From assembly GCA_002269645.1 (NCBI GenBank), contig NIVC01001545.1, forward strand, positions 62,001-126,000: a stretch of DNA of 64,000 nucleotides, written 5' to 3'. The translations under genes and the position numbers were made by a program. Of this stretch, positions 41,990-61,486 are shown piece after piece. The stretch's first letter is position 1. The number at the start of each line of letters is the position of its first letter. The notes beneath the pieces are model-generated. The model saw nothing but the letters and a program-made list of their open reading frames with translations, was not told where the DNA came from and made no database searches. This DNA comes from Macrostomum lignano. Lineage: Eukaryota.

Positions 41990-42510
41990 ACCCATCATCC
42001 AACTTGAGCATTCAGCATCCTACACATTCCCCATCATCCCATCTGAACATTCAGCATCCTACACATTCCCCATAATCCCACCTGAGCATTCAGCATCCTA
42101 CACCTTCCCCATCATCCCACCTGAGCATTCAGCATCCTACACCTTCCCCATCATCCCACCTGAGCATTCAGCATCCTACACCTTCCCCATCATCCCACCT
42201 GAGCATTCAGCATCCTACACCTTCCCCATAATCCCACCTGAGCATTCAGCATCCTACACATTCCCTATCTCCCACCTGAGCATTCAGCATCCTACACATT
42301 CCCCATAATCCCACCTGAGCATTCAGCATCCTACACCTTCCCCATAATCCCACCTGAGCATTCAGCATCCTACACCTTCCCCATCATCCCACCTGAGCAT
42401 TCAGCATCCTACACCTTCCCCATAATCCCACCTGAGCATTCAGCATCCTACACATTCCCCATCATCCCACCTGAGCATTCAGCATCCTACACATTCCCCA
42501 TCATCCCACC
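41990..42510. repeat. 39-bp minisatellite (cacctgagcattcagcatcctacaccttccccatcatcc)
   Basis: Direct. Confidence 0.93.
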
Positions 42511-43009
42511 CGAGAAAGCAAGAAATTGAATTCCAAGAGCAGGCATCAGTGAGCCAAAGCTATCCCATAACTCCTCTTATTGTGACTGCAACAATATCAG
42601 GCAGAAACGAATTAACAAACAGAATCAAAGCAATACAAATCTCATCACGTGATCTCACGCTGGCAGAAGTATGCTCATGGCTCATACAAAGAGAGCAGCC
42701 AGCAGTCAGACTCAAACCGCTACTCATTTCCGCTACAATGCAACACGGCTTGCTCCTCTACACACGTCATCAAGTTTCCCATACAGAAAGGACGAGAGTC
42801 CCGGCTCAACCGCGGTCAGCTGGTCAGCCAAACTGGCTGCATTTCTGGCCACACGCGATGCCGCACTCAGCAAGCAGGGCAGTTAAGGATGCAAGATGCT
42901 TCTTCGACTCAACACTGTGTTTTCAACTAACTATTTACTGTCTATGTATCCGAAGAAACTATTCCACCTCCCTTTCAGGCCATTCTCCCCTTTCATATGC
43001 ATTTCCTCC

Positions 43010-43620
43010 CAGCATATCCGATCCCTGCATTCCCTCTCCCTACATTCCCAATCCCTGCATTCCCTCTCCCTACATTCCCAATCATTGCATTACCTCTCCC
43101 TACATTCCCGATCCCTGCATTCCCTCTCCCTACATTCCCAATCCCTGCATTCCCTCTCCCTACATTCCCGATCCCTGCATTCCCTCTCCCTACATTCGCG
43201 ATCCCTGCATTCCCTCTCCCTACATTCCCGATCCCTGCATTCCCTCTCCCTACATTCCCGATCCCTGCATTCCCTCTCCCTACATTCCCGATCCCTGCAT
43301 TCCCTCTCCCTACATTCCCGATCCCTGCATTCCCTCTCCCTACATTCCCGATCCCTGCATTCCCTCTCCCTACATTCCCTCTCCCTACATTCCCTCTCCC
43401 TACATTCCCTCTCCCTACATTCCCTCTCCCTGCATTCCCTCTCCCTACATTCCCTCTCCCTACATTCCCGATCCCTGCATTCCCTCTCCCTACATTCCCT
43501 CTCCCTACATTCCCGATCCCTGCATTCCCTCTCCCTACATTCCCGATCCCTGCATTTCCTCTGCCTACATTTCGATCCCTACATTTCCAATCCCTGCATT
43601 TCCGATTGCTGCATTCTCCC
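43010..43620. repeat. 30-bp C-rich minisatellite (cccgatccctgcattccctctccctacatt)
   Basis: Direct. Confidence 0.93.
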
Positions 43621-43844
43621 CCTACGTTCCGTCCCTGAATTTACAATCCCTGCAATGCCTTCCTGCATTTTCCCTTTTCCATCGCCATCATAAATAAACA
43701 GACAAGACAGCAGTCAGCAGCAATTACTAGTACAAAATGAACTTTATTTTGCTAACAAGCGCATGAAATTGCTGGCAACAATATTTTTATCAAGCAAGCG
43801 GATTACAAGCTGAATTATTGATTTGAATCTTTGTATTCGGGTCC

Positions 43845-44735
43845 TTAATCCCCTTGTTTCTCGGACTGCTGCTTTTGCTGTTGCTCCCGGACCCGCTCCA
43901 CCAGCCGGCCCTCCATCTCTGCCTTCTTCTCCGCCTTCTTCTTAGCCTTCTTCTCTTTCTTGGCCTCCTCCGAGCGGGCCTCCTTCAGCCGGATGAACTT
44001 GTCGTCCTGGGCGTCAACCCGGAAGCCGAAGTGGTCCCTGGCCTCCTCCAGCTCGGCCAGCTTGGCCGCCGCCGCCTCCTCCTTGGCCTGGCGCGCCCTG
44101 GCCTGGCGGGCCTCAAACTTGGCGAGCTCCTCGGGCATCCGGGCCAGACCGGCGTCAATCCTGGCGTCCAGCTCCGCCAGCCGCCTGCGGCGCTCCTCAG
44201 CCGCCTCAGCCCGCCTGCTCAGCATCCCGGCCAGCCCGGAGCCGTCCAGATCGCCTTCCAGCCAGCGGTCCCTGGCGGTGGCCTCGGCCAGTTGGTCGGG
44301 TTCCGGCCAGCAGGCCGAGGGTTCGAGTCCCGTGGCCGCGGCGCCGAACCGGCCGATGCAGGCCCGCTGGTAGTCGCGGCCGGCCTCCAGGGCGTTGGCC
44401 GGCGGTGGGAAGCCGGACTCCGCCGAGCCGTTGAGGCGGCGGCGCAGCCGCCGCGGCAGGCCGCTGATGTCGGCCACCAGGGCGGCGCTCTCCGCCGCCG
44501 CCGCCGCCGGTTCGACTTCGCCGAATTCAACGGCTTCGTCCAGCTGCTTAAGCCGTTCGCGGCGCTCCGACATCCACTGGTCGTGAATGTCCGGCTGGCG
44601 TCGGCGCAGGTTGAAGTCGTCGACAAGCGAGTGCGGCCGATGCCATCGGGCAGCCACGTGCTTGTAGGCCAGGCCGCGGCGGGGGCAGCGGCTGCGGACC
44701 GCCCCGTGCTTGAGCAGCCCGCCGAGTTTGGCTTG
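43845..44735 (-). CDS. GADD45GIP1: GADD45GIP1/CRIF1, mitochondrial ribosomal protein mL64; main exon, start exon unresolved
   Basis: YQRACIGRFGAAATGLEPSACWPEPDQLAE, LARMPEELAKF and EARDHFGFRVDAQDDKF align by eye with the CRIF1 family (ARYGAASGV.PGSLWPSPEQL; MAKMPQM; LGYQVDPRSARF). Lys/Glu coiled tail. No in-frame ATG in this exon. Confidence 0.85.
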   Translation of the reverse strand, partial: QAKLGGLLKHGAVRSRCPRRGLAYKHVAARWHRPHSLVDDFNLRRRQPDIHDQWMSERRERLKQLDEAVEFGEVEPAAAAAESAALVADISGLPRRLRRRLNGSAESGFPPPANALEAGRDYQRACIGRFGAAATGLEPSACWPEPDQLAEATARDRWLEGDLDGSGLAGMLSRRAEAAEERRRRLAELDARIDAGLARMPEELAKFEARQARARQAKEEAAAAKLAELEEARDHFGFRVDAQDDKFIRLKEARSEEAKKEKKAKKKAEKKAEMEGRLVERVREQQQKQQSEKQGD

Positions 44736-44842
44736 CAGTGAGCTTAGCAGAAGGTGCAACCGGGGGGGGGGGGTTGGTTCTGCAACCGGAATCGAGCTCG
44801 GTACCTTTTAAAGGTTTTAAAGAGTTTTCTTGAATTATTCAG

Positions 44843-44845
44843 TAA

Positions 44846-44909
<64 letters not shown>

Positions 44910-44936
44910 TGGTGTCTGTCTGTCTGTCTGTCTGTA

Positions 44937-44979
<43 letters not shown>

Positions 44980-44990
44980 TGGTGTCTGTC
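44843..44990. repeat. (GTCT)n microsatellite
   Basis: Direct. Confidence 0.97.
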
Positions 44991-45047
44991 TACAGTGTGC
45001 ACAGCAGCCTTCAGACATGTACACTCTTTGAGCATTGTGCGGTTTGG

Positions 45048-46062
45048 CACTCATTGGCGTGAACAGCATCCGGGAGAAGTCTAGATCACTCATTGGCGTG
45101 AACAGCATCCGGGAGAAGTCTAGATCACTCATTGGCGTGAACAGCATCCGGGAGAAGTCTAGATCACTCATTGGCGTGAATAGCATCCGGGAGAAGTCTA
45201 GATCACTCATTGGCGTGAATAGCATCCGGGAGAAGTCTAGATCACTCATTGGCGTGAACAGCATCCGGGAGAAGTCTAGATCACTCATTGGCGTGAATAG
45301 CATCCGGGAGAAGTCTAGATCACTCATTGGCGTGAATAGCATCCGGGAGAAGTCTAGATCACTCATTGGCGTGAATAGCATCCGGGAGAAGTCTAGATCA
45401 CTCATTGGCGTGAACAGCATCCGGGAGAAGTCTAGATCACTCATTGGCGTGAATAGCATCCGGGAGAAGTCTAGATCACTCATTGGCGTGAATAGCATCC
45501 GGGAGAAGTCTAGATCACTCATTGGCGTGAATAGCATCCGGGAGAAGTCTAGATCACTCATTGGCGTGAATAGCATCCGGGAGAAGTCTAGATCACTCAT
45601 TGGCGTGAATAGCATCCGGGAGAAGTCTAGATCACTCATTGGCGTGAACAGCATCCGGGAGAAGTCTAGATCACTCATTGGCGTGAATAGCATCCGGGAG
45701 AAGTCTAGATCACTCATTGGCGTGAATAGCATCCGGGAGAAGTCTAGATCACTCATTGGCGTGAACAGCATCCGGGAGAAGTCTAGATCACTCATTGGCG
45801 TGAATAGCATCCGGGAGAAGTCTAGATCACTCATTGGCGTGAATAGCATCCGGGAGAAGTCTAGATCACTCATTGGCGTGAATAGCATCCGGGAGAAGTC
45901 TAGATCACTCATTGGCGTGAATAGCATCCGGGAGAAGTCTAGATCACTCATTGGCGTGAATAGCATCCGGGAGAAGTCTAGATCACTCATTGGCGTGAAT
46001 AGCATCCGGGAGAAGTCTAGATCACTCATTGGCGTGAATAGCATCCGGGAGAAGTCTAGATC
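45048..46062. repeat. 39-bp minisatellite, ~26 near-identical copies (cactcattggcgtgaa[c/t]agcatccgggagaagtctagat)
   Basis: Direct. Confidence 0.97.
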
Positions 46063-46574
46063 AATGCATGCATGGCTTGTGATTTCCGTATGCATATAAA
46101 GTACCCAGAGCTAAGGACAGCAGTTGGCACTGTTCCACGTCCAGAAGCGTTCGCAGATCAGATTCGATAAGGCAAATACCTGAACTGTAAAAACTGAAGC
46201 GCTGGGAGACAATGGAGGGGGGATTCTCAAGCCCCGAACAGATTGGCATCAGGGAAACAGAGGCAGGGACAGGCATAAACAAAGGCTTCCATGCTTATCA
46301 CTAGGCTAGCAGCACTGGCACAATGGGACCAGTGACGCCTTACTGCATGCAGTGTTGTGCTTGACAATAACTGTGAAATAAGCGAGTCCAACGGTTAAAC
46401 TATCAGCAAAACGTTGGCTCTTACACAGCCCAGTGATTGCGAATGTTGCTGCAGTTTATTTATAGCAGTTAAACGCTTACAAGCATTTCTTTAGCGAAAG
46501 ATAGTCGCGTGTTTTATTAGTGCTAAGAGGCGTATTTGGAGACTCTGCGGGATGGGAAAGGAGCCTTGGTTATA

Positions 46575-46920
46575 AGCAGTCATTGCAACACACTGTGGGG
46601 TGACAGAGGGGCCTTGGCCATAGACAACAGCCACTGCAACACACTGTGGGGTGACAGAGGGGCCTTGGCCATAGACAACAGCCACTGCAACACACTGTGG
46701 GATGACAGAGCAGGGGCCTTGCATGGCCATAGACAACAGCCACTGCAACACACTGTGGGGTGACAGAGGGGCCTTGGCCATAGACAACAGCCACTGCAAC
46801 ACACTGTGGGATGACAGAGGGGCCTTGGCCATAGACAACAGCCACTACAACACACTGTGGGATGACAGAGGGGCCTTGGCCATAGACAACAGCCACTACA
46901 ACACATTGTGTTGTGACAGA
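46575..46920. repeat. 51-bp minisatellite (cagccactgcaacacactgtggggtgacagaggggccttggccatagacaa)
   Basis: Direct. Confidence 0.92.
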
Positions 46921-47654
46921 GATATAGTGGCCTTGGTGATAAACAAAAAGGCTATTTAAACAAATAACCATAAAAACGGTATCATAAAAAGTTTAAGCCA
47001 CAAAACTTGATAGGCTAAGGATTAGCTGAATGCAACGCTAGACAAAGAATGATAAAATATGATTTGTTAACACGAGCCAAGCTATTTTTGAGAAATTTGT
47101 TTTTGAGTACAAAAAGTATATAAAAGAACAATATTACTGACATTAATAAGATAAAAGTGCACAGGAAAAGTCGCAGATAATGCAATTTTTTGGTGCTAGA
47201 TAAGATCCAATTGTATACTACATAAATAGAAAAGAAAACATAAAACCAAGCACTTCGTATTTGGTTGCAGAGTCGGCAAAAGGCATTAAAAAAAGTTGCT
47301 TATAAGAATAAGATTAACCAGACGATATGTTTAGAAAATAACTTTTTAAAGCAGAATTGAACGCAGAGACGCAAAAGGAAAATCAAGAAAAGGAATGGAG
47401 GATAGGGCGGAGGAAGGTGAACCGCTTTGGTCCAGATGAAGTTTTTTCAATGTTGCTAAAATAGTAAACACTAAAACAAAAGTTTTTACTTAAAAAAACA
47501 TACAAAACGGAACTAAAAATAAAATTTCTACTAGAGACAGAAACAGTTCAGAACGACAGAAAAAAACAGCCGAAGGAGTACTGTACATTATTTTACAGTA
47601 AAGTACAGGCTGTAACGCCGTCCTACAGACCTTTTGTTGCAGACTTTAACACAC

Positions 47655-48115
47655 ACTGCTACAGACCCTGAAAGACAGTCACAACCTACTACAGACCCTT
47701 AAAGACAGTCACAACCTACTACAGACCCTGAAAGACAGTCACAACCTACTACAGACCCTTAGAGACAGTCACAACCTACTACAGACCCTTAAAGACAGTC
47801 ACAACCTACTACAGACCCTTAGAGACAGTCACAACCTACTACAGACCCTTAGAGACAGTCACAACCTACTACAGACCCTTAGAGACAGTCACAACCTACT
47901 ACAGACCCTTAGAGACACTCACAACCTACTACAGACCCTTAGAGACACTCACAACCTACTACAGACCCTTAGAGACACTCACAACCTACTACAGACCCTT
48001 AGAGACACTCACAACCTACTAAAGACCCTTAGAGACACTCACAACCTACTACAGACCCTTAGAGACACTCACAACCTACTACAGACCCTTAGAGATAGTC
48101 ACAACATACTACAGA
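47655..48115. repeat. 30-bp minisatellite (ctactacagacccttagagacagtcacaac)
   Basis: Direct. Confidence 0.93.
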
Positions 48116-48267
48116 CCCCTACAGACCGTGGCACTACTACAGACCCTTACAGCTCCTCACTGCACTTTGGGACAGTCGCATCTTACTACAGACTATAACG
48201 CACTATAGACTATAACGCATTATAGACTATAACAGCCAAAATAAGCAAAGCTGCAACGAGTTGCGCC

Positions 48268-51200
48268 TCATTTAAAGTTGAACCGCACCTGCACCAGGTA
48301 CCTCAGACGCAGCTGATTCACATTGTACACAACGTACTCATTATAATTGAGCACAGTTGACAGGTTGCTGGCCACCAGCTTGCCAATGGGAACTTTGCAC
48401 CCGTCGGCCAACTGCTCTGCAGACGAAGGATTTGGAGTCAATTCTCCAATGCCTTTGACGCTGTTGAATCCGGCAGGCAGCTTGGCCGCCTCATAGTCGG
48501 CCTTGTTCAGCTCTCGACTGGTGCCCAGGGCCACTTCGCATAGGGCCAGCACACCTGTTGGCTTGCTTCTAGTAGCGTACAGGTAATTGGCCGACTTGCT
48601 GCTCACGTCGGCAAAGTACACGCCTTTGCCGAACATGTAGCCTGTGGCCGGCGCCTCGGGGGGCGCCACGCGGAGGCCCTGAGATGGGAGCGGGAGATTT
48701 GGGGCTGCTTGAGGGCGATTCTTGGGGCATTTTGAGGGTGATTCTTGGGGCTGTTTGAGGGCGATTCTTGGGGCAGTTTGAGGGCGATTCTTGGGGCAGT
48801 TTGAGGGCGATTCTTGGGGCAGTTTGAGGGCGATTCTTGGGGCAGTTTGAGGGCGATTCTTGGGGCAGTTTGAGGGCGATTCTTGGGGCAGTTCGAGGGC
48901 AATTCTTGGGGCAGTTCGAGGGCAATTCTTGGGGCAGTTCGAGGGCAATTCTTGGAGCAGTTCGAGGGCAATTCTTGGGGCAGTTCGAGGGCAATTCTTG
49001 GGGCAGTTCGAGGGCAATTCTTGGAGCAGTTCGAGGGCGATTCTTGGGGCAGTTCGAGGGCGATTCTTGGGGCAGTTAGAGGGCAATTCTTGGGGCAGTT
49101 CGAGGGCAATTCTTGGGGCAGTTCGAGGGCAATTCTTGGGGCAGTTCGAGGGCGATTCCTGGAAGGGATTGTTGTTAGATTCTTAAAAGGCTACAGATTA
49201 GGCGGTAAGCGGACTCACCTGAGACAGAATTCCAGCCCAGTTAGACAGCCGAGACCCGTGCCACAGCAGCATCCGGTTAGGCAGATCCGATCTGAACCGA
49301 GCAGTCTCAGGCGCTCGCTGCACTTTAAACAGCGCTCCCAAACTCAGGGTGTACAGACTGTGAGTCGGACCGTGAGTAGTCTGCAGGTATCTGTCAATCA
49401 TGGAGAACTCCTCAGAATTGGAGTCCACAGGCTCAATATCGCAGGCCAGCCGCCTGTAGCACCGGTCCAGCGGGTGCTCAGCAGCTGCCGAGTCCCCAGA
49501 CTCCTCCGCTCCATCGCTAACCACTTTCAGAGCAGTTTGAATCTGCTCCAAGGCCTGCAGCAGATCTGCCTTGGCCTGGATCTCTTCTAGGCTGCGAATA
49601 ACGGGCGGTACCCGCATGCCGAAGTCGTGCGGTATTCGGGTGTAGAAATCGTTGCAGGCCGACACGAGCTTCTGGCCGGAGCTGTGCCCGCCTCGGACCA
49701 GCGCTTCGATAGCTTTGAGGGCTACGAAACCGGCTTTGATCTGGGCGGCGGTCAGCTTGCCAAGAGGCATCCGCTTGGCATCGTAGCGCATCTCAACCAC
49801 CGTGTCCTCCATCTGCTGCACATCGCAGATCATGCCCAGCAGGGCCTGCAGTGCCGCGTGCAGCCGGCTGGCCGCCTCAGCTTTCCGCTCAGCGGCGGCC
49901 TGTTTCTTGGCTGCTTTGTCAGCTTTGTCGTCACCTGCGCCGCCGTCGCCGCCAGCCTTGTGATCCCGGTGCACCAGATCGTACTTGCCAGCCACCTACA
50001 CAAATTAATTTACATTATTTTTAAGCGTTTTTTTGGTAGAAAAAAAACTTTTATTTTCTACTGACAGTAGAGCTATAAGAAAGAGCATCAAATTTCTGAA
50101 AAGTTATTTTAAAAAAAAGGTTTCAATTTCGTCTTTTTAGAACCAGAATTTCCCAGGTAAGGTACCACGAGGTACCACAACCCGAACCCTGAACCAAGGT
50201 ATCACAACTCGAACCCTGAACCAAGGTACCACAACTCGAACCCTGAACAAGGTACCACAACTCGAACCCTGAACAAGGTACCACAACCAGAACCCTGAAC
50301 CAAGGTACCACAACCAGAACCCTGAACCAAGGTACCACAACCCGAACCCTGAACCAAGGTATCACAACTCGAACCCTGAACCAAGGTACCACAACCAGAA
50401 CCCTGAACCAAGGTACCACAACCCGAACCCTGAACCAAGGTACCACAACCAGAACCCTGAACCAAGGTACCACAACCAGAACCCTGAACCAAGGTACCAC
50501 AACCAGAACCCTGAACCAATGTACCACAACCCAAACCCTAAACCAAGGTACCACAACCAGAAACCTGAACCAAGGTACCACAACCCGAACCCTGAACCAA
50601 GGTACCACAACCCGAAACCAGCAAGACCAACCTTGGTAAAAGTTTTAGCAGCCACAGATGCCCATTCATTTTTTGTTTTATCCTCGAACTTCTTGCAGAA
50701 GAGCGCCTTGGCCCGGTCAAGGTCGGGACCACAAGGCACCAGACTGTGCTGACCGGTTTTGCCCACCCGGCCCCAGCGGAACCAGACCCAGTAGTCTCTG
50801 GGCGCCTTGTGCAACAGCTGCAACAGGTAGAACTTGTTGTTGTTAAACTGCAAGTTGGTCTGGTTCAGCATAGCGTCGTACACTGTGCCGCCTTCGGCGT
50901 GGACTCGAACTGAAGCTGCCGACAGGCCCGTCAGCTCGGAGTCCACCGCGGCGCCACCGCGGACAAGCACCACCTTCTCGTCTGAGCCGTCTTCATCCTC
51001 CTCAGCTGCTGCTGATGCTGCTGCACGACCGCTGCTACCGTTCTTCTGCTTCTGGCGTTTCTGCTTTTGCTGCCGCTTCTGGGCTTCTTCGTCATCACCG
51101 ACATCATCATCAGATGGTGGAGGCGACGGAGACGCGGCTGGCCGCTTGCGAGCCCCAGCTGCCAGACGGCCGCTGGTTCGGCGGGTTGGCGCTGAAGGCG

Positions 51201-52569
51201 CCGGCGGAGCTGCTGCAGAGGTTTGCGAGAGGGGAAAGAGTGACGGAGTGACAGACAGTTAACAGAGTGACAGGTAGGTTTGGTGAGTGACAGACAGTTA
51301 ACAGAGTGACGGATAAGTGAGTGACAAGCAGTCAAGACTCGAGAGTGAAGGATAAGTTGGGAGAGTAACTGACAGAGCGACAGACAGCCACCAGCTCACC
51401 CGCCCCAGTAGACTTGGCCGCAGCGGTTGCACTTTTAAATTCCCGCTCGGCCAGAACTCTTCGGCGAATATTTCTACGAAAGCCGGTCCTGTCGTTGGTC
51501 TGGTGCAGCTTGCGCAGGTCCACCGTGTAGGAGTTGCCGCCGATGCTGACGGAGACGGAGGCGTCACCCCGGCTGTGCGCGGCCTCCAGCTTGTGGGCCG
51601 CTGACGGGGGCATGTTGGACCACGGCTTCAGGTCAGCCTGCCACAGCGCTGCGACCTCTGCGAGGGCGACGGTTCATGGGATACTGACAGTCTGACATAG
51701 GCTACTGACAGTCTGACATAGGCTACTGACAGTCTGACATAGGCTACTGACAGTCTGACATAGGCTACTGACAGTCTGACATAGGAGCTACTGACAATCT
51801 GACATAGGAGCTACTGACAATCTGACATAGGAGCTACTGACAATCTGACATAGGAGCTACTGACAATCTGACATAGGAGCTACTGACAATCTGACATAGG
51901 AGCTACTGACAATCTGACATAGGAGCTACTGACAATCTGACATAGGCTACTGACAGTATAGGAGCTACTGACAATCTGACATAGGCTACTGACAGTCTGA
52001 CATAGGCTACTGACAATCTGACATAGGGTACTGACAGTCTGACATAGGCTACTGACAATCTGACATAGGGTACTGACAGTCTGACATAGGCTACTGACAA
52101 TCTGACATAGGCTACTGACAATCTGACATAGGGTACTGACAATCTGACATAGGCTACTGACAGTATAGGAGCTACTGACAATCTGACATAGGCTACTGAT
52201 ATTTCCAATCTGAGATTTTAAAACTCACCACGAGTTGCACTATTGCCTGACTGTAGCACAAACACAACTCGAACTTTACGCGATGGCCCAGTCGTGCCAC
52301 CTTTCCGAGTCTGAATGCCTTTGTCAAAGTCGACCGAAATCTCATAATTATTGGGCAGCTTCAGATCGCACTAAATCAAATATTGTTTTGATTGTTTCAA
52401 ATTCAATATTTCGATAATTCTTTGTTCAAGTTATAAAAATGTGCAATCTACGAGTACTTACAGTATTACTATTAGCAGCAATAGCAGCATTCAACGCTGT
52501 TATGTGTTTATCTGAGTAGTTTCTCCAAACATCAGGCCCATCTTCATATTGCCACAATGGTTTAGCCAT
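48268..52569 (-). CDS. PARP2: PARP2-like poly(ADP-ribose) polymerase, WWE-WWE-WGR-regulatory(HD)-catalytic; exons 52569-52462, 52370-52229, 51657-51400, 51212-50632, 49995-49219, 48678-48268 (~758 aa)
   Basis: WGR: VYDAMLNQTNLQFNNNKFYLLQLL..WFRWGRVGKTGQ. HD: MPLGKLTAAQIKAG..FYTRIPHDFG. Catalytic H-Y-E intact: LLWHGSR, GYMFGKGVYFAD..KSANY, LNYNEYVVY. Two WWE-like repeats at the N-terminus. Exon phases are consistent (0,1,1,0,0). Confidence 0.93.
48690..49160. repeat. 23-bp minisatellite (gggcagtt[t/c]gagggc[g/a]attcttg), last PARP intron
   Basis: Direct. Confidence 0.93.
50160..50620. repeat. 27-bp minisatellite (gaaccctgaaccaaggtaccacaacca), PARP intron
   Basis: Direct. Confidence 0.93.
51680..52200. 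repeat. 21/23-bp minisatellite (ctgaca[g/a]tctgacatagg(ag)cta), PARP intron
   Basis: Direct. Confidence 0.93.
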
Positions 52570-53097
52570 TTTAGATGTTTAGTTTTCTTTTATCTGCAAT
52601 AATGAAATTTTATATGGTTTCAACCATAATTTTAACAGATATTAATAGATATATATATATAGATATTATAGAACTGAATTCTAGTTTACACTTTTTAAAC
52701 CTATGCTAAATGTGTCAAGATAGTCTATTTTTGCATTTTTGCCTTAGCATCATTTTATCACTGAGAGTATTAAAATGGATGGAGGTTTGCAGAAACAGGA
52801 GCCAAATTCTGATAGTCTAACACAGGCCAATACGCAGATATTAAATGATCCAGCAATGCAAAGATATTTTTTGTAAAGTGGCATGAATGTATGGTATGAG
52901 CATTGCAGTTAATGCAATATAGTGCTTGGTGTATACCACTTTCTGTGGCATTTGGCATAGCCACAGTGCAGCCCTTGGCAAGAATACTTTGCATATGGTA
53001 TTCTTCAGCATTTGTTGCATAGAAAAAAAAATTCTATCCATTAGACTTCACCAGTCTATCAATAACCCTTTAAGAACTCTGTGCCATATCTTTAATG

Positions 53098-53621
53098 CAA
53101 GGTCAGCAGACTCTGACCCGCAGGCCACATGTGTCCACAAGGTCTCTCTATCTGGCTTTTAGGTCCATTGAAAGTTCACAATAGCAATCTAGCCTGCTCA
53201 AGGTTTGTGTCTTTTCTAAGTTCTCTCCTCTCCTTTCTCTCTTCTCTCATCTTGTCTCCTTTTCTCCTTTCCTCTCATCTATTATCTTCTCTCTTCTCTC
53301 ATCTCTCTTTTCTCCTCTCATCTCTTATCACATCTCTTTTCCTCTCTCTTCTCATCTTTTCTCCTCTTTTTTCCTTTCTCTTCTCATCTCCTCTTTTCTA
53401 TCCTTTCATTGCCTTACCTTTCTCTCTCTCCTATCTTTATCTTTTCTCTTCTCTCATCATGTCTACCATTTTGGCTCTTATTTCTCCTCTTTTCTGTCAT
53501 CTCTTATCTCCTCTTTTGTCTTTTCTCTTAACTATTCCATCTCATTTCCACTCTTATCTAGCCCATAGAAATGACCTAGATTCCTTATCAGGCCCTTGAA
53601 GTAAAAAGTTGGTCAACCCTC
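53098..53621. mobile_element. Possible degenerate hAT/Charlie-like non-autonomous element with CT-rich interior
   Basis: The left end caaggtcagcagactctgacccgcaggccacatgtgtcc and right end ggcccttgaagtaaaaagttggtcaaccct resemble Charlie-type termini as recalled. The TIR match is poor and no TSD was verified. Confidence 0.25.
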
Positions 53622-53875
53622 ATTTTAATGAATATTTACGCATTTTTAGAATTTTAGCAAATAATCTTGGCTAATGGTTAAGCTTTAGCTAACTAAGCTT
53701 AAGGTAGCAATAGACTAGCAAAGCTAATCAGCCAGTTATCACATGATTAATACAAATTTTTAGCAAGCCATTAGCATTTTATAGTTGAATTTGCACTTGC
53801 ATTAACAATAACAAACTAATGATAGCTACCTAAAATAACTGGCTAAGGCTAAGCACTATCTTTATATTCAGTAGT

Positions 53876-54020
53876 GTTCCGCCGTAAGGAGGGTCCATGT
53901 ACCGTAGCCGTAGCCGTAAGCAAAACTACTGCTTACTCCAATTCTCCGTGTTCCGTAGCCGTAGGGACCCCGAAATTACCATATTTCCGTAGTTCCCGTA
54001 GCCGTAGCCGTAGCCGTAGT
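53876..54020. repeat. Cluster of ccgtag hexamers
   Basis: Direct. Confidence 0.7.
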
Positions 54021-55387
54021 TTTAACAAAAAGTCTACAAAACAAAACATTTTGACTCAAGAAGATAACCTAGTGCTTAAACAACTGCAAATTAAATTAGA
54101 AAATAAAAGAAACACTTAATTGTCTTTGTAATATTATATTTTGTCTTTTTTCAGAGCAACAATACTTAATCGTTATTGAAAGTACTAACGCTAGACTGTT
54201 TCACATTAATAAAAATTGGAGTTTGCTAGTGTTTTATTGTACTTTTTTAGGTATATTTTATAAGTTTCTAGGTTTATAATATAGTTTACTAAAAGTATCT
54301 TTGTTTTACTCTACCTGTTTCGAATATTTTTTCAATTTTTAACATTAATAATGTGGTAGGGCGATCTACCACTGACCGACGAACGTGATGACGCCGTGTG
54401 GTGACACTTGCTCATGACTCTCTGTTTTTCCGTCACTCGGTGCGCCGTCCCTTGCCCCATCCCTCACCCCATCTTTTGCCATTGCTCAATTGTTTGTTAA
54501 TTCCCGTTTGCGGCTTTAGTGTCGTCCGCTGCCCCATCGTCTGCCCCATTCCTTGCCCCATCCTTCGCCTTCCTGCCCCATCTGTTGCCCCATCCCTGTC
54601 CGGACGACATTGTTTCCCCTATTTATAAGACCATTTCGGGCTGCCTTTTGGTTTGTTCGCGCGCGCGCATTTTTTTCCGTATTTGTCGTTTTTCCTCGTG
54701 TAAACTCCGTGGTTTGTGCTCGTTCATTAGTGTTTGTGTTTATCCAGTTTCTGTTTAGTGTTTATAGTTTTTGCCTCTGCTAAGTAAGTTTTAATAGTTT
54801 CGCTTAATAGTTAGTCGTTCGGCACCCGGCACCGGCCGTGGACATCTTGTGAAATTAATATTTTTCTCTAATAACTACCGCCTGCGCAATTAACAATTGA
54901 GGCAGAATCCTTATAAACTATTTAAACTATAAAACTATAAACTATTTATAAAGTTTAGTTTATAGTTTAGTTTAAACTATAAACTATTTATAAACTATTT
55001 AATCCTCCGACCCTAAGGAAGCCGTACAGGCTAACAATAGACATTAGGCATTAAGAGATTAGGTATTAGGGAAGTAGATTAGTTACCGCTAGACAACCTT
55101 GATGCCCGGAAAACGCTAGACTTTCGGACTGAATTAGGGAATTAGACAGTGTCTTACCACTCGGGCACTACACGCTATCACAAGGTTTTCTAAGAAATCG
55201 TGTGAGTTAGGAATTCCTAGGAAAAATTCATAGTTTTGAATATTTAAAGTAGAAATTTAGTAATTTTAGACAGACAACTAGGTCTACAGCACGATGAAAT
55301 AATAGGACAGGAGTTTCCCCTGGAACAACTTGGTGGCAGCGTAAAGGGATCAAGAAACCAGCGGAAAACTAACTAGATAAGTGAAAA

Positions 55388-56332
55388 ATGGCAGGAATTA
55401 ATGACGCACTAGCGTTACTAGCCGAAGAACTTAGGAATCGTCTAGAAATAGGACTGGCAAGGCATGTGAGAATTCAGAAGTACACGCCAAGCCAAGACAT
55501 TAGGATCTGGTTGACAGCTTTTGATCAGAGGTGTGAATCAGAAGGAATTGAGGAGAATCATAGGAAAACTGAGCTATTAGCTAATTTAGGCTTAGCAACA
55601 GCGTTCGCCGCTGTACAACGACTTAATCTGCCAGAAGATCTAGGGTATGAAGAATTCAAGGAGCACTTGATCGAGAGATTTGGTAGAATAGGAAATGCGT
55701 CAGAGTTTAGGGAAGAGTTTAGAGGCAGAATGCAAGGAAGGAATGAGTCAAAGGACGCTTATGCTGATGCACTGATTGAGCTATCAGATAGGGCCTTCCC
55801 GAACATGAATGCAGAACAGCGAGAGGAAGAGATAGTAGAGCAGTTTATTAAAGGAGTTAGGATTCCGCCAGATACTAGGGAGGAGTTAATCTTCGCCCAA
55901 CCTGCGAATCTGCAAGAAGCTAGGCGAATGCTAAGGCGAATTGAGGCCGCATGGCAACTATCGCACAAAGGAGGTGTTAGGATGATGAAAGAGGGAGAAG
56001 GAGAGCAAGAGAAGAAGCTCCAAGATTTAGTTCAACAGCAGAAGAGTGAGTTAGAGCAACAGAAGAAGCTGATTCAGGAGCTGATGGTGCACAAGCCACC
56101 ACCTATGGTTAGACTACAGCCATGCCCAGCTCAGATGCCGCAACGGAATTATCAGCAGCAACCGGTGTTTCAGCCGAGATTTCCGGCATATTATCAGCCT
56201 AGACCTAGGAGAGAGTTTCCGATTCGCTCTTATTCGCCGCAGCCAGGAAGGTGTGCGATTTGCCAGCAACCCGGCTCAATAAGGCCTGGTATAGGTCACC
56301 AGTGCCGAGTGAATCGCAAACAGGGAAACTAG
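55388..56332 (+). CDS. Gypsy gag (element 2)
   Basis: KYTPSQDIRIWLTAFDQRCE...QGRNESKDAYADAL..EQFIKG; ends GGA AAC TAG at a slippery site. Confidence 0.88.
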   Translation: MAGINDALALLAEELRNRLEIGLARHVRIQKYTPSQDIRIWLTAFDQRCESEGIEENHRKTELLANLGLATAFAAVQRLNLPEDLGYEEFKEHLIERFGRIGNASEFREEFRGRMQGRNESKDAYADALIELSDRAFPNMNAEQREEEIVEQFIKGVRIPPDTREELIFAQPANLQEARRMLRRIEAAWQLSHKGGVRMMKEGEGEQEKKLQDLVQQQKSELEQQKKLIQELMVHKPPPMVRLQPCPAQMPQRNYQQQPVFQPRFPAYYQPRPRREFPIRSYSPQPGRCAICQQPGSIRPGIGHQCRVNRKQGN

Positions 56333-58526
56333 AGTACAGAGGGTGGCATGAGAGGCCACGACCCTCTAGGAGAAATGAGTACAAAATGAAGGCCTCTAAT
56401 TGTAAATATAGTGTAGATAGTGAAGGTTGGCGAACAGTCCCAATGCGAAAAAGACACATGGGTGGTGTGCATGTAAATAATGCTTTTGCACCAGCACCAA
56501 TTTCCACTTATTCTGCGTCAGCACCTCATGCGTATGCACCAGCCGCATCATCATGTGTCAATCCTGCTTATGCTACTGAAAACCTAGCACCAGTAGTAAA
56601 AGAAAAATCCGAACCCGATTTTCGCCAGCCAAAGCCTAAGAAAATAGTTAAGCAAAAGGTTTTTCTGAAACCGAAAGTTGAATTAATAAACCAGACAGGC
56701 TATGAAGCAATAGTAGTATGCAGTATTGATAATCAAGAAGTAGACTTTCTAATAGACACAGGCGCTCAAAATAATTTCCGAAGCAGATTAGTTTGGTCAA
56801 AAGTATTTGAGCCGAATCAGATTAGAGAGACAAGTAGGAGAGTTTCCACATTTGATGGAACTACAGTGAAATTAGAAGGAGAAGCGAGTACTTTAGTGCA
56901 GTTCGGAGATTTAGAATTAGAAATAGAATTTCTACTTTGCAGCCACGATTGTGACAACATATTAGGCATGGAATTCTTTAAAGATCGCTGTGAGAGCATC
57001 CAATTAGCCAAAGGCATGTTAATTTTTAAAAGAGGGGACTTGTATTGTAATCCCATGCAGTATACTCATTTGCCAGTAAAAGTCTGCCGAGTATATACTC
57101 AGGAGAGAACAGTAGTTCCGCCTAATAGCGCACTGCGAGTTCCAGTTAGATTAGCCAACAATTCAGAAACTAATTATGGTACGCCAATGACTATTGAGAC
57201 TATTGGAAGTAGTATAAGAACTAAAGGCAAGACATTAGACATGAATCCGACCTTAGTTACTATGCGCGATGGCGTAGCCATAGTAGAAGTAGTGAATCAA
57301 AGCACGGTAGAGGTGAAATTGCCGAAATCAACCTTAGTAGGTTTAGCTAAGCCAATCAGAACTAGAGAGCTCACCTACATGAATGGTGGAGTAGATCAAA
57401 CCGTGCCACCAGATCAGCCAATCACCGGACGTGTCAATCAAACGCAATCTACAAGTGAAACTCGGATTAGCGAAATAGATATTAGCGAAAATTTGACCGC
57501 AGAACAGAGAGATAGAGTGATTCAGCTCGTAAAAGAGCATAGAGAGGCCTTTTCGCAACATGATCTAGACATGGGCTTAACATCGTTAGTCACGCATGAG
57601 ATCTCATTAAGAGACGAGACACCTGTTAGGATTCCAACCAGAAGGATCCCCCCTCATCTGCAGAAACAGGTAGATGCCCAGCTAGATGACATAATAGCTA
57701 AGAACTTAATTAGGCCATGCTATTCTACTTATTCAACACCTTTAGTGATTGTACCAAAGAAAGATGGTACTATTCGAATAGTTAGTGAATTTAGAGTGCT
57801 GAATTCACGAGTGAATTACTTTCCGTATCCGCTGCCAAATATTCAGGAGACATTTTCGAACTTAACAGGCAGTCAATACTTTAGCAGCCTTGACCTGAAT
57901 TCTGGTTATTGGCAAGTTCCGATAAAAGAGGAACACAAGTTTATGACCGAATTCTCAACATTAACAAGAGGTCAGTTTGAGTACCAAGTTATGGCTCAGG
58001 GCTTATCTAATGCCCCAGGTACTTTTCAAAGGCTTATGAATCTAGTATTAGCAGGCATTCAGCATAAATATGCCATGTCATACATAGACGACATAGTGAC
58101 CTATTCTAAGCAGTTTGAAGATCATTTAGAACACCTCAGAGAGGTATTTAAAAGACTAATTAGTGCAGGACTGAAGCTAAGAGCTAAGAAGTGCAATCTA
58201 TTCCGCAGTAGAAAAGCATGTGGCAGAGTGCATCCCATGCTTAGAGAGCGAAAGAGGCCATAAAGTGCAAGCTCCGATTCAGTCATTTCCAATTAGTGAG
58301 CCGTTTCACCGATTACACATAGATGTGATAGGGCCAATTTCTCAGATTAGCAAAAGAGGCCATCAATATGTGTTAACAATAGTAGACAGCAATACTCACT
58401 ATCCATTCGCATTTCCAATGCGCAACCAAAAAGCTGACACAATTATTAAGCTATTGCAAGAAAGAGTATTCAGTGAATATGGCCAATACCACTGGATTCA
58501 CACAGATAATGGCAAAGCATTCACTA
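56323..58526 (+). pseudogene. Gypsy pol remnant (element 2): protease and RT to KKCNLF, joined near 58210 to an integrase fragment that ends at HTDNGKAFT
   Basis: FLIDTGA protease, YFSSLDLNSGYWQVP, YIDD; then C.PC, LHIDVIGP, YPFAFP in a different frame. RNase H is absent. Confidence 0.88.
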
Positions 58527-59081: not shown

Positions 59082-61486
59082 ATGGAACAGGATATGGATA
59101 GGCATCTTGCTTCTAAATCTAATCATAAGAATAGTGAAATAAATATAAAATGTACATTTTGTTCATTTTCATGTCATAGTATTTTTAAGGTTATATCTCA
59201 TATTAAGTTTACACATTCATTTGGATGTCACTGTTTTACCTGCCCTATCTTAGATTGTTTTTTATAGTAGTGGTTCAATAGAAGCTTTAAGAGCTCATGC
59301 TTATCATATGCATAGTCAACTTACTAATGTTGATTCGTATGTTATGTCTAATTTAGAAAATGCTCTGAAAACTGAGGATGAAAAAAATGAAACAGTTGAA
59401 GTCTGTCCTGATCATTGTCAACCTAGTCTTAATGGTACCAATGAGCCTAATAATGGCTTAAATGAAGAAAATGAAAGTATTCCAACAATAAATCCAGAAA
59501 AAATAACATGTGATACCCTTCGAGACAATATAAGAAAAAACCTTGCTAAAAACTTTGTATACTATTATTTCAAATGTGAAAATGCATTTTTTATTTCTAA
59601 AGAAAAGTCTAATCAGTTATGTGAATTGGTAAAAGAAATGGTTTCACAATTTGCTCATGATTATCTCTGCCTATTTGAACAGTTTTTAAAGGAGGAATAT
59701 CCATCTTTTAGTAAAAACTTAATTAATAATCAGTTTAATATGCAAGAAATGATTGATATCTCATTAGAATTTTTATTAACTGATTCAAAGGTCTTTGATA
59801 TTCTAAAACATCAATATAACTTAGTTCAGCCAATAGAAATTGTCCACCCAGAGATGGGTTCTAAAATCCAATATATCCCAATAGCTGAAATGCTTGCTTC
59901 AATAATAAAAAATGAACATTTGATGAAATTTATTGTTGAGCCATGTATCAATAATTATAACTTTTTTACATCAACCTATTTTAAAGAATGTATATCATCA
60001 TTGGTAACCAGTGACAGTGGGATTTTTTTGAAACTGTACTCAGACGAAATTGAAGTTTGTAATCCAATTGGATCAGCCAAGACAAAGCATAAGCTATGTG
60101 TTATTTATTATAGTATTCTTAATTTTCCTGAATACTTGAATTCATCATTAGAATTATCTTTCTTGTCAACTAGTTTTTCTGAGTCTACAATAAAGAAAGC
60201 AGGCTTACAATTTTGCTTGTCTCCATTAATTGCTGAGCTTAATGATCTATATTATAAGGAATTTGAAATAAATACTTCTTTAACACTGCCTGTTGTGGCT
60301 TGCTTTATGACTGGGGATAATCTATCTATGCATCAAATGTTAGGTTTACAGAAATGCTTTTCTAGTGGGTATGTATGCAGGTTTTGTTATAAGGAATATA
60401 GACAGCTTTGTAGTATAAATATTCAACATTTAGATACACTCTTTCAATTTAATTATAGGACCCATTTATCAAATATCAATGATTCACAACAATTAAACAA
60501 TGGCTTTGTTAGAAATTCAGCTTTTGAGGGTTTGTCTTATATTGATTTGCAATATTTTTTCCTACCTGATATTATGCATGATGATTTGGAACGATTTTCA
60601 CATCTGGTTGTGTGTCTTGTACTATTAAATGCTATGGAAAAAATCATGTAAGCATGGATTTATAAATGAACAATTTAGCAAAATTTATGATATGTCACTT
60701 CCTAAGCTAAGCAAATATAACATAAAAAACTTTCATTTGCCATGCACTGCTAGTCAAATGATAGTCATCTTACAATATTTTGGTTTACTTTTTGGGGATT
60801 TATTTGATTATGATGATGACATTTGGATATTATTCTGCAACCATAAGCTTTTTCTTAATATTATATTATCACCATATTATGATAAGGATGTTGATATTGA
60901 TTATTTTAAGTTTTTAGTAGCAGCACAACTTGAAACTATATATAAATACACTGACTTTAACCCAAAATACAAATGTAAACTATATTATATCTGCCATTAT
61001 CCAGAATTATACCATTATTTTAGTGGTCTAGGGTATCTTTGGTGCATGCGAAGTGAGGCCCAACATCAGGTAATAAAGAATATAAGTAGACAATGTAAAA
61101 ACTATAATAATGTTGCCTTTACATGTGCAAAAAACTTTCAAATTCAAAAGGCTTTAGTTGTTACACATTTCATGCCCCATGATCTAAAAGAAGCAAAGTG
61201 TAGTAGTATAATTAAAATCAGTTCAATTTTAACAACTCCTGAGAAAATCAAACTAAGTAATACACTCAATGTCAAATTTGATTCATTAGGCCAGATTTGC
61301 TTCTCAACCACAGTTCTAAATTTTAGAGGATTTCATTATAAAACTCCAACACTTAATAAAAGATATTGCTTGGCTATATTTAAAGATAGCTATATTGATT
61401 TAATAATGATTTCTTGCATCATTAAGGTCACAAACAAATGGGTTCTCATTTGCATAAAGATTAAAGCTACATTTTCAACCCATTAA
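59082..61486 (+). pseudogene. EnSpm/CMC-type transposase, broken into three ORFs (59082-59267, 59308-60651, 60629-61486)
   Basis: N-terminal C2H2-like fingers; LYSDEIEVCNPIGSAKTKHKL..YYS, GDNLSMHQMLG..F..GYVCRFC, PDIMHD, HYPELY, WCMRSEAQH. These are motifs typical of animal EnSpm transposases, partly degenerate. Confidence 0.8.

Follow-up and report, generated by a model that had tools for sequence, protein, structure and literature searches.

Poly-ADP-ribose (PAR) reading is coupled to ubiquitylation in RNF146, TRIP12 and HUWE1, three E3 ubiquitin ligases with WWE domains. In RNF146, specificity for iso-ADP-ribose comes from the residues that bind the distal phosphoribose. The roles of the RNF146 pocket residues Y107, Y144, Q153 and R163 have been described (PMC8853533, PMC9367489). 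Two consecutive WWE domains are found in Deltex/DTX1 (2A90, 8R5N) and in PARP13/ZAP, PARP12 and PARP7 (7KZH, 7SZ2). The Deltex tandem is presented as a Notch-binding unit in the title of a reference cited in PMC8853533, and of the two domains in ZAP the second alone binds PAR (PMC10450202). PARP13/ZAP, PARP12 and PARP7 are clade 3 PARPs, in which the catalytic Glu is missing (PMC2964712). Placental PARP2 begins with a short, disordered, basic region, which in human PARP2 binds PAR and is required for PAR-dependent activation and branching (PMC6089979). Human PARP2 terminates in Leu569-Trp570, residues that contact HPF1 (PMC12596734). WWE domains at the N-terminus of non-mammalian PARP2 were noted by Perina et al. 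2014 (PMC4245714).

The gene described here is the PARP2 orthologue of the flatworm Macrostomum lignano, an ordinary PARP2 DNA-repair gene that is already annotated. It runs from 52569 down to 48268 on the minus strand of the 64,000-nucleotide stretch of DNA that we analysed (the window), with a start-to-stop span of 4302 bp, and comprises six exons, separated by GT..AG introns throughout, that encode a protein of 758 amino acids. For the gene model we rely on the deposited annotation and on orthologues with a collinear order: the spliced protein is identical at 758/758 positions to GenBank PAA66648.1 (UniProt A0A1I8IFF0, M. lignano). The window agrees base for base with contig NIVC01001545.1, and the locus is identical to it over 24,302 bp, with the same 4302-bp gene span. 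The original prediction was of a PARP2-type enzyme fused to a pair of WWE domains at 51400-52569, a range that covers precisely exons 1 to 3, the 5' part of the gene, and every peptide string that it quoted was found on the minus strand where it had been placed.

Exon 1 (52462..52569, 108 nt, amino acids 1-36) starts with an ATG at 52569-52567, encodes the N-terminal half of the first WWE domain (WWE-1) with strands and helix, including Tyr8 (52548-52546), and ends at a GTAAGT donor. An in-frame TAA lies four codons 5' of the ATG (52581-52579, minus strand), so a further 5' coding exon is not expected; a TTGCAG that is a candidate spliced-leader acceptor lies ~25 nt 5' of the ATG. Exon 2 (52229..52370, 142 nt, amino acids 37-84) has a TTTAG acceptor and a GTGAGT donor and contributes the C-terminal half of WWE-1, with Gln56 at 52313-52311 and Arg67 at 52280-52278. 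Intron 2 is filled by a 525-bp non-coding minisatellite (51675..52199; 21-bp unit, 24.6 copies, 90% matches) that separates the WWE-1 exons from exon 3 (51400..51657, 258 nt, amino acids 84-170), which encodes the entire second domain, WWE-2, with Trp89 at 51643-51641, Tyr127 at 51529-51527, Gln136 at 51502-51500 and Arg145 at 51475-51473. Exons 1 to 3 are in frame with one another and with exon 4. The claim that two tiny exons missing from the open reading frame track encode WWE-1 was confirmed, as splicing exons 1 and 2 yields a full WWE domain. The list that lacked these two exons is prokaryote-style, and public eukaryotic annotation includes both.

In the complete protein, Pfam domains follow in the order WWE, WWE, WGR, PARP_reg and PARP. 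Exon 4 (50632..51212, 581 nt, amino acids 170-363) encodes a disordered linker and then the WGR domain. The linker (amino acids ~155-254) is Pro/Ala-rich, both basic and acidic, carries KRxxKxKRxK-type patches and has an AlphaFold2 (AF2) pLDDT below 50. The WGR domain (PF05406; amino acids 281-356) reaches 85.1 bits, where the cut-off is 22, and its W316-G317-R318 columns (50775-50767) are invariant in 66/66 orthologues. Exon 5 (49219..49995, 777 nt, amino acids 364-622) encodes the PARP regulatory (helical) domain (HD) and the start of the catalytic domain. The regulatory domain (PF02877; 136.8 bits, amino acids 406-543, profile positions 1-135 of 135) directly precedes the catalytic domain and is helical in the AF2 model. 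The remainder of the catalytic domain is encoded by exon 6 (48268..48678, 411 nt including the stop codon, amino acids 623-758), and the PARP profile (PF00644) matches over its full length with 233.1 bits. The H-Y-E triad, which polymer synthesis requires, is intact and invariant in 66/66 orthologues, with His609 (49260-49258) on exon 5 and Tyr643 (48618-48616) and Glu736 (48339-48337) on exon 6.

From WGR to the catalytic domain the protein scores 544 bits against human PARP2; PARP1 gives 381 bits over this span, and PARP3 gives 205 bits. This WGR-HD-ART region of human and mouse PARP2 (6X0L, 7AEO) is also the best match in the PDB, and the same activation logic is predicted for the flatworm enzyme. 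No zinc finger, PADR1 or BRCT domain was matched in the Pfam scan at E-values up to 1, and the named best matches of the protein are all PARP2. The predicted PARP2-type enzyme was thus borne out, as was the order downstream of WWE-1: WWE-2, a basic and acidic linker, WGR, HD and an intact H-Y-E catalytic domain.

Both WWE domains exceed the Pfam gathering cut-off individually (PF02825; 21.1 bits), in keeping with their proposed identity, and the matches are far above chance. WWE-1, from spliced exons 1 and 2 alone, scores 41.8 bits (E=1.5e-10, profile positions 2-66 of 67) and is a complete domain solely after splicing; WWE-2, from exon 3 alone, scores 50.2 bits (E=3.4e-13). WWE-1 is recognisable only by profile and by fold, and its sole phmmer match in the PDB, an aryl-alcohol oxidase, was judged spurious. 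The best PDB sequence match of WWE-2 is the WWE domain of TRIP12 (E=6e-6 with the single sequence, 67 bits with the family profile), and the family profile matches the WWE domains of DTX1, TRIP12, HUWE1 and RNF146 via its WWE-2 half. In the AF2 model of the N-terminal region (pLDDT 89.8, pTM 0.83), each WWE domain consists of two strands, a helix and four strands. Single-domain Foldseek matches to TRIP12, HUWE1 and RNF146 superpose with an RMSD of 1.1-1.6 Å over 66-69 residues (TM(target) 0.72-0.85); WWE-2 resembles the domains of these ligases in sequence and in predicted fold. As a tandem, the pair aligns with DTX1, Deltex and ZAP (2A90, 8R5N, 7KZH) over 155-167 columns that span both domains, but with an RMSD of 10-13 Å and a TM of 0.34-0.41, so that a Deltex-like rigid tandem is not supported by superposition. 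The pTM of the model suggests that the two domains are packed in a defined arrangement, one that differs from the rigid-body arrangement of Deltex and ZAP.

We compared both domains with the RNF146 pocket residues Y107, Y144, Q153 and R163. The equivalents in WWE-2 are W89, Y127, Q136 and R145 (phmmer alignment to 3V3L), of which W89 was placed by spacing and by the TRIP12 alignment; ZAP likewise has a Trp at the Y107 position (PMC8853533). These residues are conserved in 65/66 (W89, Y127 and Q136) and 63/66 (R145) orthologues. WWE-1 has three of the four (Y8, Q56 and R67), with Ile47 at the Tyr144 position, where Leu, Met or Ile is found throughout the family; its pocket positions come from motif comparison and a MAFFT family alignment, with no structural superposition behind them. 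For the writer-reader mechanism that the original prediction proposed, the residues conserved speak for ADP-ribose binding by WWE-2 alone, a prediction that parallels the binding of PAR by the second WWE domain of ZAP. The M. lignano WWE-2 deviates from its orthologues at A87 (Trp in 64/66) and M99 (Tyr in 61/66), and these two replacements might weaken its fold or pocket. Solved WWE structures contain ATP, ADP or ADP-ribose (8R6A, 9BKR, 6PFL), and iso-ADP-ribose is therefore not necessarily the physiological ligand.

To place this architecture among animals, we surveyed the best 120 homologues listed. Two WWE domains were counted in 64 of these, one in 55 and three in a single protein. Among the matches listed, those with two WWE domains come from sharks, sturgeon, lungfish, amphibians, reptiles, marsupials, molluscs, annelids, a brachiopod and echinoderms, those with one from teleosts, gar and eel, and the one with three from a sponge. 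The combination of WWE, WGR, PARP_reg and PARP occurs in proteins named PARP2 from sponge to marsupials, and a 2545-nt Logan contig from another species carries an unbroken 2187-nt ORF with the same architecture. Non-placental PARP2 proteins (from Xenopus tropicalis, Ambystoma, Scyliorhinus, Lingula, Patiria, molluscs and the marsupials Trichosurus and Notamacropus) have the same WWE-WWE-linker-WGR-PARP_reg-PARP order as M. lignano, are 40-47% identical to it across 99% of the length, and share the WWE-2 pocket and H-Y-E. M. lignano differs in having A87 and M99 in place of the near-invariant Trp and Tyr and small insertions in WWE-1 (T57-R58 and S77-S80), and it lacks the basic extension of ~25-60 residues (MxxRKR start) that precedes WWE-1 in orthologues, its basic patches being in the linker.

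A tandem-WWE N-terminus is therefore a widespread animal state of PARP2, present in most animals except placental mammals. The original prediction held that WWE domains are absent from mammalian PARP1-3, which stands for placental mammals but not for marsupials, whose PARP2 (P0093, P0113) has both. What it called a fusion is not a special one: the architecture is common in animals, has been described (PMC4245714) and is annotated for this very gene. A wide distribution had been foreseen as removing the novelty while leaving the domain call intact, and this is what the survey returned: the WWE pair is real but is the normal state of animal PARP2, so the observation is correct and not new. Its discovery value is little, given an annotated gene and an architecture in the literature since 2014. 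It does mean that domain tables based on human and mouse hide a folded ADP-ribose reader in the PARP2 of most animals.

With good confidence, we explain the locus as a whole as a PARP2 orthologue of the form WWE-1-WWE-2-linker-WGR-HD-ART, in which PAR reading by WWE-2 is the mechanism that we infer. Most likely, the protein would be a PARP that DNA breaks activate and that reads pre-existing PAR through WWE-2. WGR would bind a DNA break, as in human PARP2, releasing autoinhibition by the helical domain and switching on PAR synthesis. WWE-2, with its complete RNF146-type adenine/phosphate pocket, would bind ADP-ribose units in PAR that a PARP1-type enzyme, or PARP2, had already made at the lesion. 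Held to these chains through the long, flexible linker, the catalytic module would tend to be retained, to be activated a second time and to extend or branch the chains. For WWE-1, whose Tyr144 equivalent is absent, the likelier role is that of a structural partner, or of a site that is weaker or of different specificity. PAR reading by WWE-2 would have its counterpart in human PARP2, where the N-terminal region binds PAR, and the disordered region of placental PARP2, standing where M. lignano has folded WWE domains, may be a functional replacement for the WWE module. In RNF146, TRIP12 and HUWE1 the reader is part of a ubiquitin ligase, whereas in M. lignano the enzyme that writes PAR would carry it. 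The protein also differs from PARP13/ZAP, PARP12 and PARP7 in having no CCCH zinc finger and in being a clade 1 H-Y-E polymerase.

We consider it unlikely that the WWE pair instead mediates protein-protein interactions or senses mononucleotides (ATP/ADP), and so targets PARP2 to partners or tunes it to nucleotide levels. Such a role would fit the best tandem Foldseek matches, which are Deltex/DTX1, by analogy with the Deltex WWE domains that bind the Notch ankyrin domain; it would also fit the several WWE crystal structures that hold ATP or ADP and not PAR fragments, and the family-wide absence of one pocket residue from WWE-1. However, rigid-body superposition of the tandem with Deltex or ZAP fits poorly, and each of the four AMP-pocket residues in WWE-2 recurs in 63 or more of the 66 orthologues, which range from sponge to marsupial, as would be expected of a maintained nucleotide or ADP-ribose site on an enzyme that makes PAR.

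This strong conservation of the WWE-2 pocket argues that PAR-guided action of PARP2, ascribed in humans to the disordered N-terminal region, is ancient. Quite possibly, though we would stop just short of calling it probable, the WWE pair was a dedicated PAR-reading 'primer sensor' as early as the animal ancestor and PARP2 has always acted in a second wave, as a polymerase or brancher guided by PAR, with placental mammals substituting a disordered basic region and vertebrates adding an HPF1-contacting Leu-Trp tail. No binding, activity or recruitment data on any WWE-bearing PARP2, and no biochemical study of one, were found in the literature searched. A first direct test could therefore come from M. 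lignano, a tractable, transgenic-ready animal whose WWE-bearing PARP2 would let PAR-primed activation and branching be examined cleanly.

M. lignano has at least five distinct database entries with 94-100% identity to this protein (g1, g2, g4 and UniProt variants), which raises the question of whether the present locus is a silent, decaying or redundant duplicate. This is very improbable, as its 758-codon frame is unbroken, its splice sites are canonical and every catalytic and WGR residue invariant in 66/66 orthologues is intact; some of the differences elsewhere look like model or assembly errors, such as a frameshift-like 'AGAGWAKP' in P0003 and truncated ends. It is scarcely credible that the AT-rich exons 1 and 2, beyond the 525-bp minisatellite, are foreign to a GC-rich PARP gene whose true start lies further downstream: GC3, which is 0.64-0.77 in exons 3-6, is indeed lower in exon 1 (0.28) and exon 2 (0.45), and the public models of two other copies lack these exons (P0005, 486 amino acids with no WWE domain, and P0004, which begins within WWE-2), but a full-length WWE arises only from the exon 1-exon 2 splice, frame is preserved at the exon 2/3 and 3/4 joins, the WWE-WWE-WGR order is collinear in more than 60 orthologues including one transcript-length contig, and PAA66648.1 has exactly these exons, P0004 being the truncated model because its start falls mid-domain. 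A mis-join or chimeric assembly at this composition shift across the minisatellite was likewise rejected because the splice completes a domain and because both the collinearity of the orthologues and the deposited model speak against it.

At its other end the protein terminates in ...VRFNFK followed by the stop codon, and so differs from human PARP2 in having no C-terminal Leu-Trp, which does not affect its family membership. A C-terminal LW is present in 89/120 of the best matches listed, all from vertebrates, and is missing from all invertebrate orthologues listed, which M. lignano resembles (FNFK or FNFN). The alternative 3' end of P0005 (donor CAG|GTGCGG to an exon near 46491-46545) was rejected because read-through gives ...VRFNFK, like the termini of invertebrate orthologues.

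Reading the minus strand of the window from 52620 to 48200 gave a gene model with six exons (e1, 52569-52462, 108 nt; e2, 52370-52229, 142 nt; e3, 51657-51400, 258 nt; e4, 51212-50632, 581 nt; e5, 49995-49219, 777 nt; e6, 48678-48268, 411 nt including the stop codon). All introns start with GT and end with AG, and the joined 2277 nt coding sequence contains no internal stops and encodes 758 residues. The ATG at 52569 was taken as the start codon because an in-frame TAA lies four codons upstream. The original prediction had placed a PARP2-type PARP with a tandem WWE pair at 51400-52569; this range corresponds exactly to e1-e3, and every peptide that it quoted is present. Intron 1 cuts the first WWE domain (WWE-1), which is whole only in the spliced e1+e2 product and thus provides independent evidence for the e1-e2 join. 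The gene (48268-52569) straddles a compositional boundary, with GC3 of 0.28 in e1, 0.45 in e2 and 0.64-0.77 in e3-e6, and GC content of 33-41% in the upstream flank (52500-55000) versus 55-62% in the gene body.

Domains were annotated by a Pfam-A profile scan, in which both predicted WWE domains individually exceeded the 21.1-bit cut-off: WWE-1 (residues 5-70) in the e1+e2 product alone (41.8 bits, E=1.5e-10, profile positions 2-66 of 67) and the second domain, WWE-2 (residues 89-149), in the e3 product alone (50.2 bits, E=3.4e-13). They are followed by WGR (residues 281-356, 85.1 bits), PARP_reg (406-543, 136.8 bits) and PARP (557-755, 233.1 bits) domains; Pfam-A detected neither PARP-type zinc fingers nor a PADR1 or BRCT domain in the 758-aa product. 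The segment from WGR to the C-terminus scored 544 bits with human PARP2 (6X0L), 381 bits with the corresponding PARP1 fragment (4DQY) and 205 bits with PARP3. The catalytic H-Y-E triad (H609, Y643, E736) and W316-G317-R318 of the WGR domain occupy columns that are invariant in 66/66 aligned orthologues. The assignment as a PARP2-type enzyme with an intact triad is correct.

An AlphaFold2 model built with the 66 orthologues was confident for residues 1-150 (pLDDT about 80-96) and for the WGR, helical and catalytic parts, and residues 155-254 are predicted to form a disordered linker (pLDDT <50). The N-terminal 160 residues modelled alone reached a pLDDT of 89.8 and a pTM of 0.83, and a Foldseek search of the PDB with this model returned only WWE structures at E <0.1. 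Single-domain matches to the TRIP12, HUWE1 and RNF146 WWE domains had RMSDs of 1.1-1.6 A over 66-69 residues, whereas matches to the tandem WWE of DTX1, Deltex and ZAP spanned about 160 columns with RMSDs of 10-13 A. WWE-1 and WWE-2 thus both have the WWE fold, and their mutual packing appears to differ from that of Deltex and ZAP.

The top database matches to the 758-aa model are M. lignano proteins. The 90% cluster of the top match includes PAA66648.1 / UniProt A0A1I8IFF0 (BOX15_Mlig024608g2, 758 aa), to which our model is identical (758/758). The deposited gene spans 4302 bp on NIVC01001545.1 (GCA_002269645.1), equal to 48268-52569, and the window is identical to the deposited locus across all 24,302 bases compared. 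The gene, with both small exons, is thus already publicly annotated, as 'hypothetical protein' in GenBank and 'Poly [ADP-ribose] polymerase' in UniProt. The Mlig_3_7 gene set is presumably transcriptome-guided, and the deposited model would then be cDNA-based. The database models of other M. lignano copies are poorer and discordant: P0005 is missing the WWE exons and has a different 3' exon, P0004 starts within WWE-2, and P0002 and P0003 skip the whole linker. The copies are near-identical, and these models look like annotation artefacts, not isoforms. The P0005 model uses a donor (CAG/GTGCGG, 48285-48290, minus strand) just before the natural end and splices to a short exon (46491-46545) inside a 46491-46838 ORF, giving the tail SLQIRLLALIKHATIFR.

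All 115 non-M. lignano proteins among the 120 matches listed carry WWE, WGR, PARP_reg and PARP domains, and most are named PARP2. WWE copies were counted in the 120 matches listed with an HMM built from WWE segments. Two copies are present in 64 (sharks, sturgeon, lungfish, frogs, salamanders, squamates, turtles, marsupials, bivalves, gastropods, annelids, a brachiopod, sea stars, sea urchin and M. lignano), one in 55 (teleosts such as P0013, gar and eel) and three in one (P0019, from the sponge Dysidea avara). In another species, a 2545-nt Logan contig encodes this WWE-WWE-WGR-PARP architecture in a single uninterrupted ORF of 2187 nt, a transcript-like confirmation that all domains share one mRNA. 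Perina et al. 2014 described non-mammalian PARP2 with N-terminal WWE domains (PMC4245714), and the survey of Citarelli et al. 2010 lists WWE for clades 2 and 3 only (PMC2964712). Because of the homologue spread and the 2014 report, the architecture is known, and its distribution points to an origin ancestral to animals. The original observation is thus confirmed and its structural interpretation supported, but neither is new: the gene had been annotated before, the architecture has been in print since 2014, and hundreds of database entries show it. The statement that WWE domains are absent from mammalian PARP1-3 holds for placentals but not for marsupials, whose PARP2 (P0093, P0113) keeps both; the loss from PARP2 is thus placental, not mammalian.

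In RNF146, Gln153 holds the adenine, which is stacked on Tyr107, and Arg163 and Tyr144 bind phosphate (PMC8853533); Y107A, Y144A or R163A abolishes recruitment to poly-ADP-ribose (PAR) (PMC9367489). A phmmer alignment to 3V3L equates WWE-2 Y127, Q136 and R145 with RNF146 Y144, Q153 and R163. By spacing and TRIP12 alignment, W89 takes the place of Y107, a position where ZAP likewise has Trp (PMC8853533). These residues are conserved in 65/66 (W89, Y127 and Q136) and 63/66 (R145) orthologues. A family profile matched the WWE domains of DTX1 (93 bits), TRIP12 (67), HUWE1 (51.5) and RNF146 (32); the part that matched was the WWE-2 half (around profile positions 75-147). Judged from sequence, by motif comparison and a MAFFT family alignment, WWE-1 retains Y8 (family residue Trp), Q56 (54/55) and R67 (48/57) and has Ile47 at the Tyr144 position (Leu, Met or Ile in the family). 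No sequence match of WWE-1 alone to solved WWE domains was detected by phmmer against the PDB. As the pocket is complete in WWE-2 and the Tyr144 equivalent is absent from WWE-1, the predicted reader is WWE-2, with WWE-1 as an auxiliary, echoing PARP13/ZAP, in which PAR is bound by the second WWE only (PMC10450202). The M. lignano WWE-2 itself is slightly aberrant, with Ala87 (51647-51649, minus strand) versus Trp in 64/66 orthologues and Met99 (51611-51613, minus strand) versus Tyr in 61/66.

Binding of a DNA break by WGR would unlock the helical domain and allow the H-Y-E domain to polymerise ADP-ribose. The WWE reader, on its flexible linker of ~100 residues, could then capture PARP2 on pre-existing PAR, which would promote its retention and secondary activation as well as chain extension or branching. 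Experimentally, the nearest parallel comes from human PARP2: there the disordered N-terminal region binds PAR, and both PAR-stimulated activity and the formation of branched chains depend on it (PMC6089979). A folded, tethered WWE reader would serve the same purpose. This mechanism is plausible from established PARP2 biology, is not specific to M. lignano, and agrees with the 'writer-reader' idea of the original prediction. No study of a WWE-bearing PARP2 was found in the literature searched.

M. lignano PARP2 ends in VRFNFK (48268-48285, minus strand), without the terminal Leu-Trp that in human PARP1/2 contacts HPF1 Phe268 (PMC12596734). A Leu-Trp ending is found in 89 of the 120 matches listed, all vertebrate, and is absent from M. 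lignano and all invertebrate orthologues among them (molluscs, annelids, echinoderms, brachiopod, sponge, flatworm), every one of which ends in FNFK, FNFN or a similar sequence. This HPF1-binding tail may have been added to PARP2 in vertebrates.

Eight long minisatellite arrays (42005-42514, 43018-43600, 45048-46063, 46577-46921, 47659-48149, 48699-49162, 50170-50616 and 51675-52199), each with a different unit (21-51 bp, 6.6-26 copies, 90-99% matches), lie at 42005-52199. Three fill PARP2 introns 2, 4 and 5 and the others lie in the 3' flank; on both strands the arrays give rise to long, spurious ORFs made of repeats. Downstream of PARP2, the next gene annotated on the deposited contig (292 aa there) corresponds to a GC-rich (76% GC at 44000-44499) CR6_interact ORF (43845-44759, minus strand; PF10147, 68.7 bits; GADD45GIP1 / mitoribosomal mL64-like). 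LTR-retroelement remnants on the plus strand (55388-58263, perhaps to about 61486) comprise a gag-like ORF with no Pfam match, followed by one encoding aspartyl protease and reverse transcriptase; two further ORFs at 59308-60651 and 60629-61486 had no Pfam match. A 1693-aa retroelement ORF (14058-19139, minus strand) encodes RNase H and integrase. A 558-aa ORF (35175-36851, plus strand) has a weak N-terminal BRCT match (BRCT_2, 33.1 bits) and could belong, as an exon, to a second DNA-damage-response gene close to PARP2.
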